DNA of 64,000 nucleotides from Ascidiella aspersa (Eukaryota). A model generated the notes under the pieces. That model saw only the letters and a program-made list of their open reading frames with translations. It ran no database searches and was not told where the DNA came from. Where the stretch lies: positions 13,020,001 through 13,084,000 of the forward strand of contig OZ004610.1 in NCBI GenBank assembly GCA_963924565.1, written 5' to 3'. Position numbers and translations under genes: made by a program. Below are positions 16,939 through 19,900 of this stretch, piece by piece (positions within the stretch are counted from its first letter, which is position 1; each line of letters starts with the position of its first letter).

Positions 16939-19900
16939 CTGGTGGTGATGAAACAAGAAAAAATAAATGAATATGATCTAGTAAAAGTGCAAGAGTATTG
17001 GCTGGTTCCAAAAACGTTACAGACTGCTTGGGCATTGGATAACATAAGCTTTAACCTATTTTTACGAGTTTTTTGTAAAGCTTTGATAAAATTAAATGTA
17101 TGCTAATCCCTGCATTGTTGCGCTAAATTAACTTTTGGTAAAAGTGAACCGCTGAGCGCATAAAGTTAATTAATGTGGGTTGCGAAGTAGAAAGAGATTC
17201 ATACTGAAAACATAACATCGATATTTATTCCTTGGGCATAAAGTTATACCAGCACAATATACGCAAAGCAATAGCTCTTCGTCGAATGTGCAAAAGAAAA
17301 TGTATTTAATTTTTTTTTCGGATTAACTTTAAAAAGTTCAACCCACCTGTGCACATCTTCTTTGTAGCTGTGGTTGCTGGTGGTAACCGGCGAAAGGCTC
17401 TGATGACGTGCGCCCATCAGCGACGTCAGATTGGAAACAGCCTCGGCCGGATCGATGGACATCGAAGCGTCCGAGGACAGGCTGTGGGAAATTCCCCCGA
17501 ACCCACCGGGAACAAAACCCCCGTAGTTGGAAAGGGGATTGGAACCGAACATCGCTTGGGAGGCGAGCTGTGCTGCGTCACCGAATGACATCTGAAATTA
17601 AAACAAAATTTTCTTTTTTAAAACTCGAAACAAAAAATTGGAAACTGCGATAAACTTGAATATAAAGTTAGTCGTTCAAATACAGAAGGAATGTTCTAAG
17701 ACCATATGTCGACACAGGCCGCGCATTTATATTGTAAAAGTCAATTATGTAACTCGTTCAAAAACACCAACAGAACACCAGTGTGTACTATACGCCACTG
17801 TTTACAATTGCGTTCCGAATTAGCTTTTGTTTCGGCAGTACTACTAAGTTACAAAACAAAGATGTTTAGGTCCTAATTTTTTTTGCTAAAAAGTGCATCC
17901 ATTTGAACAGTCGAAGCAAAACGTTTACAATGACTTACCTGCATGCCAGCAAGGTTCATCGGCGCACCATAGAATCCCTGGTTGGAACTTGAGTCAATGC
18001 GATTCCGAATCGAGGGACTACTGCATGAAAAATATAATTTAGCATCACTTTACCCTTCACATAGCGACAGTTAGCAACATGTTAAAAGCAAATCGTTACC
18101 AACACACACAAGCAACAAGCAGCATGCATAAAAGCAGGATTAGGGCGTGCAGAAAGAGAAAGGAGCATGCAGAAAGCCAACGCAGCCGAAGCCAAGCAAC
18201 AACTATTTGAAAACAGAAGCCTGGTATGGCAATTAGGCCTTCAAGCTTTGGTTGTTTTTCGCGTCAAATTAAACGAGATTTGTCGACCGGTGAGTGGTGC
18301 TTTGTTGTACATAAATCGGGCACAAAGGGAGAGAAGAGGGACAGATCTGATTCGAGGCAGTAGTACTAGCGTTGTGTATAGTAACGTGCTGGAGCGTAAT
18401 CCGTAGTGTGGGACAAAAGAAGGAGGCAAGACGAGGAGGTTTCTATAGACATTATAATTAGGAATGTACACGTGTTGTGGCACGTGTGGTGCGAGGTGGA
18501 GTATAAAGGTCAGTCGGTGCCGGTCGCAAATTTCGTGTCCGACGGATGCTTACTGGGCACGGGCCGCGAGGGCCGCATCCCGTTCGTTGTACTTGCGTGG
18601 TCGTCCGCGCTTCAGATGTCGGCCCTTGCGGAACTCGCGGTCGTCCACGGTCCAGTAGGAGCCCATTACGTCCTCGCACCGCTTAAAGCACTTATGCAGC
18701 GACAGGTTGGTGCGAATGGCGCTCTGCGGGCGATACCAAACAAGAAATTTGCATTGGGTTTCTAACTGCGCGCGTGAAGCCCTAGCACGTGGGCCTGTGT
18801 GCAACGAATCGTCAAGAGCAGCTTAACCTTTCCTCTAGTCCTGTTGTCAATACTGTTTTATAACTGGTTAATGATACCACCATTTATTGTAAATATTACT
18901 GTTTTCAGGTAGTCTAAGAAATACACTATTTACATGTTTTGTTTAGGTTAGCCTCTAATTTTTTTTTTCATAAACAGTCCGTCCAAATGCATTAAGTATT
19001 TGGTGGTAGCACAAACCGATCATATTTTGACAGAACTCAACGGCCCTCCCGACGCGTTTGATTAAACTTCGCCTTAAGCCAAGACAAAGCGTGGCGTGCG
19101 GGCGCTAAATTTTTGCGTTGTGCGTGTTCGGATCAAGTGCAGGCGCGTCGCAACTGCATCAGCGTGTGTCGTCATAGCTTTACAGGCTGCGCGTGTCATA
19201 CCAGGACCGTTTGGTTGACGGTGTAAGTAAATATGGCAAGAAGCACACCAAAAGCAAAAGCATGGCGGCGCCGCAAGGGCGTCGAAAAACAAAATAAACT
19301 AAAAACACACGACGCACTAAATGTAATAGTAGTATAGTAGTATAGTTAAAGGTGGCAGAGAAACCATTCGAGCAGCACGAGCAGAGAAACCAGGTTGCAA
19401 CAAACATAAAAAAACAGAAGCGGTGTAGCACAGCCCGTCGCTAGAGCGGGGGAGGGCATACCCTGAGAACTTTTGCGGCCGTCGCTTCTGGTACTCGCTC
19501 TCGTCCACCGTCCAAACCGCTCCCTTAACATTTTCGACCCGCACAAAGCACTTGTGCAGGCTGAGATTGTGCCGGACGGCGTTCTATACATAGAGAGGAT
19601 GCAGTTTCGTCATCATTGTCAAGGCACGCACGCGGACCTTGCTGGTCGGAACATTTTCGCTAACATTTTGTTCATCACCCATACCTAGTGGAGGCTATAA
19701 CTAATACCGGTTTCCACGCTTAATCGCTTTCCTTTTTAGCTGACGGTGAAAATATAGTGTAATGTTTCAAGCCTAAAGTTTCTCTGCCGCTTCGGATAAA
19801 TACGAAAGGTAATTAAAACTCCCCTTTTGAACCTACCGCATTTAGGCAAAATCTGTATTCGCTTTGTTAATTAATAAACCTGTTGAATTTGGATAATGGA

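Follow-up and report, generated by a model that had tools for sequence, protein, structure and literature searches.

Tandem alternative forkhead exons of the FOXP1 exon 18b type in the FoxP gene of the tunicate Ascidiella aspersa

The DNA analysed in this study is a stretch of 64,000 nucleotides from Ascidiella aspersa (GCA_963924565.1, contig OZ004610.1, positions 13,020,001 to 13,084,000), referred to throughout as the window. Its minus strand carries a FoxP gene, the parts of which were found to be colinear in tblastn searches with full-length FoxP proteins, and within this gene two tandem exons, designated A and B, encode alternative second halves of the forkhead domain. The locus is real and well conserved, and it extends an alternative-splicing switch that was already known to a further species; the A/B arrangement is not new, having been known across bilaterian animals since 2010 (PMC3002244). 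We consider it highly probable that this is the single FoxP gene of the tunicate, carrying the ancient bilaterian pair of alternative exons that arose by tandem duplication and encode the C-terminal half of the forkhead domain.

The order of the FoxP parts on the minus strand is zinc finger (44.7 and 36.6 kb), zipper (31.4 kb) and forkhead exons (23.1, 20.0 and 19.5/18.7 kb). The tblastn-matched segments cover the first half of the C2H2 zinc finger (44631..44777), the second half of the finger together with the start of the zipper (36568..36663) and a leucine-zipper segment (31425..31475), for which exon limits are not implied. The first forkhead exon (23096..23172) was placed by tblastn and sequence, its boundaries being approximate; it ends in AG, and a splice to such an exon would fit the loose RNA read ends at 20054. 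The constant forkhead exon (19951..20052, 102 nucleotides) matches positions 14-48 of the Pfam Forkhead profile (E 1.7e-8) and ends in phase 0 at a donor common to A, B or C (TGG AAG|gtatgg), and RNA reads splice out at 19951.

Exon A (19462..19583; 122 nucleotides, 40 codons plus GG) encodes the second half of the forkhead domain in its canonical form, with the motif NAVRHNLS, and is bordered by tatag|AAC and CAGG|gtatgc. Exon B (18554..18723; 170 nucleotides, 56 codons plus CA) is the alternative second half with SAIRTNLS...KRGRPRK, and is bordered by cgcag|AGC and CCCA|gtaagc, where reading through the donor gives CAG TAA. Both have AG acceptors, GT donors, a phase-0 start and a phase-2 end, and each is followed by three shared coding exons. 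The first of these, exon C (17939..18020, 82 nucleotides), was defined from the sequence, the RNA joints and an ortholog at 1650-1731 of L006, a metagenome contig of a related tunicate that has exons A to D in matching order and phase. Its first base, T at 18020, completes GG+T (Gly) after A or CA+T (His) after B, and it resembles the GSPTLVKN... segment 3' of the forkhead domain in a vertebrate-type match (P0139). Exon D (17347..17591, 245 nucleotides) has RNA joints at 17591 and 17347 and is conserved at 2277-2457 of L006. The coding part of the last exon, E (16431..16938), was delimited by the RNA joint 17347->16938 and by translation, with the stop codon at 16433-16431. An initial annotation of the window, made from its letters, had given the coordinates, lengths and phases of A, B, the donor at 19951 and the acceptor at 18020, all of which proved exact on the sequence.

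Exons A and B both align with positions 49-85 of the Pfam Forkhead profile, A with an E value of 2.6e-8 (34.3 bits, above the 27-bit cut-off) and B with 1.2e-4 (22.6 bits, just under the same cut-off). Among solved structures, exon A matched FOXP2, FOXP4, FOXP1 and FOXP3 at E values of 3e-20 to 1e-14, the next Fox class following at 3e-5, and exon B gave the same ordering with FOXP1-4 best. In the 308.6 Mb genome the two exons are each other's sole relatives (59% identity, E 3e-8). The gene thus shows the characters of the FoxP subfamily, namely a zinc finger and zipper 5' of a C-terminally placed forkhead and a forkhead sequence like that of FOXP1-4.

When exon B was used as a query against 1.84 billion protein representatives, about 99 proteins were recovered at E<1e-10. 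Nearly all of them have xAIRTNLS...RGRPRK, after which the scores fall sharply to canonical NAVRHNLS sequences. The named members include RefSeq FoxP isoforms from a nemertean, wasp, beetle, snail, barnacle and copepod, and a primate gene model among the matches contains both exons in tandem. The vertebrate sequences recovered in this search matched the features, including RGRPRK, that had been given for FOXP1 exon 18b in the initial annotation. A maximum-likelihood tree of the 40-residue core placed exon B, as had been proposed, with FOXP1 exon 18b and the protostome B exons in one clade (support 100/98). Within this clade the window exon B groups with two unnamed open reading frame fragments (99/96), beside separate vertebrate and protostome groups, although with 40 alignment columns only the tree does not resolve the branching order there; the window exon A was placed among the A exons. 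Exon B also has the helix-3 His->Thr replacement, the basic RGRPRK wing extension, the tandem position downstream of A and the compatible phases of a B-type exon. No annotated full-length tunicate B isoform was present among the top database matches to exon B, and an annotation limited to one isoform would plausibly overlook the B form.

The segment KRGRPRKYN of exon B (residues 38-46; window 18590-18625) gave a match to Pfam AT_hook under the threshold (E 0.012, 15.9 bits versus a cut-off of 17.4). Because nearly every B exon, whether vertebrate or protostome, carries RGRPRK, an extra minor-groove contact by this AT-hook-like segment is possible.

Comparison with L006 was used to assess selection on the two exons. 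A and B show 86-87% nucleotide identity, ending within about 10 nucleotides of the splice sites, and the flanking introns show 61-65% aligned identity versus 57% for shuffled sequence. By the Nei-Gojobori method, exon A has 16 synonymous and no non-synonymous differences (100% amino-acid identity), and the first 45 codons of exon B have 12 synonymous differences and one non-synonymous difference (omega ~0.02). The variable tail of B contains an in-frame 3-nucleotide indel with the phase-2 end preserved, and the cag|AG acceptor and the CA|gtaagc donor are retained. Disruption of exon B in a close relative had been named at the outset as a finding that would speak against the switch; the exon is intact in L006. 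Within the species, a DNA contig differs from the assembly at one position inside exon B, a synonymous change (18619, CGA to CGG). The low omega, the phase-keeping indel, the retained splice sites and the exon-limited conservation together make a strong case for translation of B in this frame, and the purifying selection argues for its use as a functional coding exon. The split His codon that the initial annotation had pointed to at the 3' junction of B is present in the window (CA+T) and is not conserved; exon C of L006 begins with G, and the codon there is CA+G (Gln).

Santos et al. showed in 2010 that in Drosophila melanogaster FoxP and mouse FoxP1 the second half of the forkhead comes from either of two alternative exons, predicted the same exon pair in arthropods, annelids, molluscs, amphioxus and the tunicate Ciona savignyi, and placed the tandem duplication at the base of Bilateria, with loss of B in FoxP2-4 (PMC3002244). 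The suggestion that the switch is older than the FoxP1-4 duplications is therefore correct but was already published, and the published dating is unchanged by the present data. The DNA contacts of FOXP2 are N550, R553, H554, S557 and W573, of which N550 and H554 are the only direct base contacts (PMC3002244); the change of the base-contacting Asn and His to Ser and Thr, which had been singled out in exon B, falls on exactly these two residues. The replacement of His by Thr in fly B, and of Asn by Gly together with His by Thr in mouse B, has been modelled as relaxing specificity (PMC3002244). Exon 18b alters the DNA binding of FOXP1, and MBNL1 is its dominant repressor, as described in reviews and a reporter study (PMC13044900, PMC8189919).

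The closest counterpart of the window is the vertebrate FOXP1 exon 18/18b pair (16/16b in mouse). There, as here, an internal cassette pair follows the same constant forkhead exon with B downstream of A, both helix-3 base contacts (Asn, His) are replaced in B, and the motifs GS[FY]WTVDD and RGRPRKY are common to both. The length of exon B, which the initial annotation had equated with that of 18b, is indeed equal to that of the vertebrate exons examined (P0001, P0012, P0014), all of 56 codons plus 2 nucleotides, or 170 nucleotides. The introns flanking exon B in the window are rich in YGCY, and MBNL1 is the dominant repressor of 18b in mammals. The two systems differ in the first residue of B, which is Ser here and Gly in vertebrates, in the tail after RGRPRKY, which is unrelated, and in the prominence of a form skipping both exons in the single RNA sample available here, a difference from the FOXP1-ES switch; the tunicate B exons form their own subclade apart from vertebrate 18b.

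The FoxP A/B pair of D. melanogaster likewise consists of tandem second-half exons; in helix 3 of its B exon Thr replaces His, and that exon belongs to the same B clade. Fly B keeps the Asn, unlike the window (Ser) and vertebrates, and has been described as one further exon at the gene's 3' end, whereas here both exons precede three shared coding exons. In Ciona savignyi and amphioxus an A/B pair was predicted from the genome, with a single FoxP in the tunicate (PMC3002244). The present case concerns a different tunicate and adds to that prediction the omega value, the exon-limited conservation, conserved islands in the introns and the first RNA junction data.

Taken together, these comparisons suggest how the gene would work. 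The alternative exons A and B encode helix 3, the beta-strands and the wing. Splicing of the constant exon to A gives the canonical FoxP forkhead with N-x-x-R-H-x-x-S. In the forkhead obtained by splicing to B, Ser and Thr stand in place of the base-contacting Asn and His, strands S1 and S2 differ, and the basic wing is longer and includes the AT-hook-like KRGRPRK. Both exons would be used as internal cassettes whose phase-2 ends join the common exon C. If FOXP1 exon 18b and Drosophila FoxP-B are taken as a guide, the B isoform should read DNA differently from A, binding with altered or relaxed specificity. A third product, in which both exons are skipped, is indeed made; its reading frame stops at the junction and encodes a FoxP lacking the recognition helix.

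Transcription was examined in one RNA-seq run of the same species and of unspecified tissue, of which about 6% was read; 77 reads were placed on the locus, and junctions were listed from 3 reads upwards. All 77 have the orientation that a gene on the minus strand should give. Four junctions were recorded: 19951->19583 (constant exon into A, 4 reads), 19951->18020 (skipping A and B, 7 reads), 17939->17591 (C into D, 7 reads) and 17347->16938 (D into E, 3 reads). The estimated depth was about 11x on the constant exon, 6x on exon C, about 0.9x on A and no more than 1.8x on B. Since the depth on the constant exon and C is far above that on A, and skip reads outnumber reads into A by 7 to 4, the skipped form is at least as common as A in this sample.

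Translation across the joined exons showed that skipping both gives TGG AAG|TAG, with a stop at the join, and cuts FoxP off before helix 3. Inclusion of both A and B leads to a stop 19 codons into B and, because the reading frame stops, does not give a productive product. The A/B choice had been described initially as binary. That description holds for productive protein, as A+B and neither both run into a stop, and does not hold for RNA, in which 7 reads omit both exons; transcripts including both were not seen. The pair is thus exclusive at the level of productive protein and not of RNA. The TAG formed at the join is absent from L006, whose exon C begins with G; skipping there would do no more than shift the frame.

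Several points weigh against the reading of the gene given above. The check by junction reads that had been proposed for the locus succeeded for 19951->19583; no junction into or out of exon B reached 3 reads among the 77 (about 6% of one run, a thin sample of unspecified tissue), and the A to C junction 19462->18020 was likewise absent at that threshold, so that internal-cassette use of A comes solely from frame, homology and the acceptor reads. About 300 read letters fall on 18520-18851, that is, on exon B and beside it, and this signal is at least in part intronic pre-mRNA, because the bin 18686-18851 exceeds the capacity of its 38 exon positions. The difference in DNA binding between A and B is carried over from other species, and the regulatory role of the intron motifs described below is putative.

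The abundance of the skipped transcript raises the question whether it, and not A or B, is the main regulated product in some tissues, which would dimerise without binding DNA and leave A and B as minor forms of a three-way switch. The 7 skip reads against 4 into A, and the depth on the constant exon and C exceeding that on A and B, are in its favour, as is the position of the stop, exactly at the junction and 3' of the zinc finger and zipper exons. Forkhead-less FoxP isoforms are known (FOXP2.10+ and the intron-retention isoform of Drosophila FoxP), which keep the zinc finger and zipper and have no working forkhead; they arise by alternative polyadenylation or intron retention, unlike the double exon skipping here. 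The reads are few, however, with 3 and 4 distinct start positions in one sample, the junction TAG is not conserved in L006, and a premature stop followed by two further exon junctions and a long 3' untranslated region is a typical decay target, so the skipped product may simply be degraded. We regard this alternative as unlikely. A broader version, in which A, B and the skipped form constitute a three-way switch, MBNL/RBFOX-type control of the FoxP forkhead predates vertebrates, and the skipped form acts as a dominant negative or as an mRNA-decay on/off valve, is a similarly doubtful proposition.

A second alternative is that exon B is a terminal exon, as in D. melanogaster FoxP-B, ending in ...ARAQ-stop and polyadenylated in the B-C intron. 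D. melanogaster B has been described as an extra 3' exon (PMC3002244), the B to C junction is missing from the 77 reads at the 3-read threshold, and reading through the donor of B meets an immediate TAA; the same Q-stop ends the unspliced open reading frames of L006 and of vertebrate 18b fragments. The shared Q-stop, however, is an automatic consequence of the sequence CA|GTAAG. Both the phase-2 end and the donor GTAAGC are conserved through an in-frame indel, the read depth at 18022-18519 is zero, and annotated insect and nemertean B isoforms run on into downstream exons (P0078, P0038), RefSeq already annotating internal-cassette B isoforms in several protostomes. A terminal exon B is accordingly judged very improbable. 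Least probable of all, to the point of being hardly credible, is that B is an unused pseudo-exon relic of the ancient duplication and that only A and the skipped form are made, since the lack of B junction reads in this sample, and the fact that the closest database matches to B are unannotated open reading frame fragments and not full-length tunicate isoforms, stand against an omega of 0.02, intact splice sites, a frame-preserving indel and the consideration that a neutral relic would not remain open and conserved while the introns of L006 diverged almost to randomness.

The introns next to A and B were searched for elements that could direct the choice between them. The A-B intron contains three islands on the minus strand within 19241..19388, TTCTCTGCTCGTGCTG (19388-19373), TTTTTCGACGCC (19289-19278) and TTTTGCTTTTGGTGTGCTT (19259-19241), which are YGCY/UGCU-rich and colinear with L006 528-613 (E 6e-5 and 2e-4) in an intron that is otherwise unalignable; the three matches are, in this order, 16/16, 11/12 and 18/19. 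The YGCY count was 24 versus 10.7 expected. In both species the A-B and B-C introns are enriched about 2- to 4-fold in YGCY and UGCU, and this enrichment was not found in the window's intron upstream of A. The B-C intron carries two UGCAUG-containing elements on the minus strand within 18116..18170, GCATGCTCCTTT (18170-18159) and GCATGCTGCTTG (18127-18116), which match two copies in the B-C intron of L006 (1228-1238, 1271-1282) at 12/12 and 11/11. The sequence GCATGCTGCTT(G) occurs twice in the B-C intron of each species, and in the window's B-C intron TGCATG was found twice versus 0.1 expected (p 0.004).

On the basis of this motif enrichment and conservation, and of these only, exon choice is probably set by trans-acting factors that would bind the YGCY-rich and GCAUG-containing sequences conserved in the introns on either side of B, a pattern that fits MBNL- or RBFOX-type control. 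A search of the genome with the Pfam profile Fox-1_C, the C-terminal domain of RBFOX, gave no match, but the controls were blank too. About two RNA reads lie inside the A-B intron (19184-19349) over the conserved islands, where coding conservation is lacking; they could represent pre-mRNA, intron retention or an unrecognised small exon.

Other causes of exclusivity were also considered. Incompatibility between U2 and U12 splice sites was rejected, all donors being GT with a U2-like context, and steric hindrance between the donor of A and the branch point of B is ruled out by the 738-nucleotide A-B intron. Competing RNA pairing, either by docking and selector sites or by a helix looping out exon B, is regarded as unproven. 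An inverted-repeat search showed that the last ~20 nucleotides of exon B pair with an upstream intron site in both species. In the window this helix (18559-18575/19041-19057) has 8 base pairs plus extensions, and in L006 (1023-1045/766-788) it is a perfect 12-base-pair GC-rich stem, with a different encoded peptide tail. It is present in minimum-energy and centroid folds; overall fold z-scores were -0.6, and the duplex energies were marginal against shuffled and natural controls (p 0.015-0.105).

Selection evidence thus confirms the FOXP1-ES-type forkhead switch as an internal cassette in a tunicate, a member of the sister group of vertebrates, which is useful for tunicate genome annotation and for the study of FoxP in chordate neural or stem-cell biology. 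For this lineage the analysis adds selection on exon B, a length equal to that of vertebrate 18b, intron elements common to two tunicates and an abundant double-skip transcript. The prominent skipped transcript, the conserved intron sequences and the sub-threshold AT-hook match in nearly all B-type wings (RGRPRK) are new but modest leads.

The initial annotation had taken the animal to be an invertebrate chordate, which is borne out by its mitochondrial genetic code. In mitochondrial COX1, AGA and AGG codons occur at invariant glycines (GAGTGW, DPGGGGDP, FTVGGLTG). Reading AGR as glycine is the ascidian mitochondrial code, and the animal is therefore a tunicate. The COX1 match (L004, G000:C75:23317-24654) contains only 2 TGA codons. 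The best protein matches to this COX1 were 77% identical. The gene sits past 23 kb of the mitochondrial contig, a great length for the mitochondrial genome of an ascidian, and one that concatenation in the assembly may explain. One of the nuclear contigs bears a COX1-like open fragment of 71 residues (L005, G000:C7:30046519-30046731), probably a nuclear copy of mitochondrial DNA.

Further observations concern the 3' end of the FoxP gene and the DNA beyond it. The last coding exon includes a run of about 14 glutamines (window 16700-16800). RNA coverage extends about 0.9-1 kb beyond the stop codon, to about 15500, indicating a 3' untranslated region of roughly 1 kb. An open frame of about 39 residues (DSRSMLRGKYE.RRTDIAKDRLNVKLVNC.KVVCDLCFL) occurs twice on the minus strand, at 14438-14554 and 8142-8258, which suggests two copies of a repeated element downstream of the FoxP gene.

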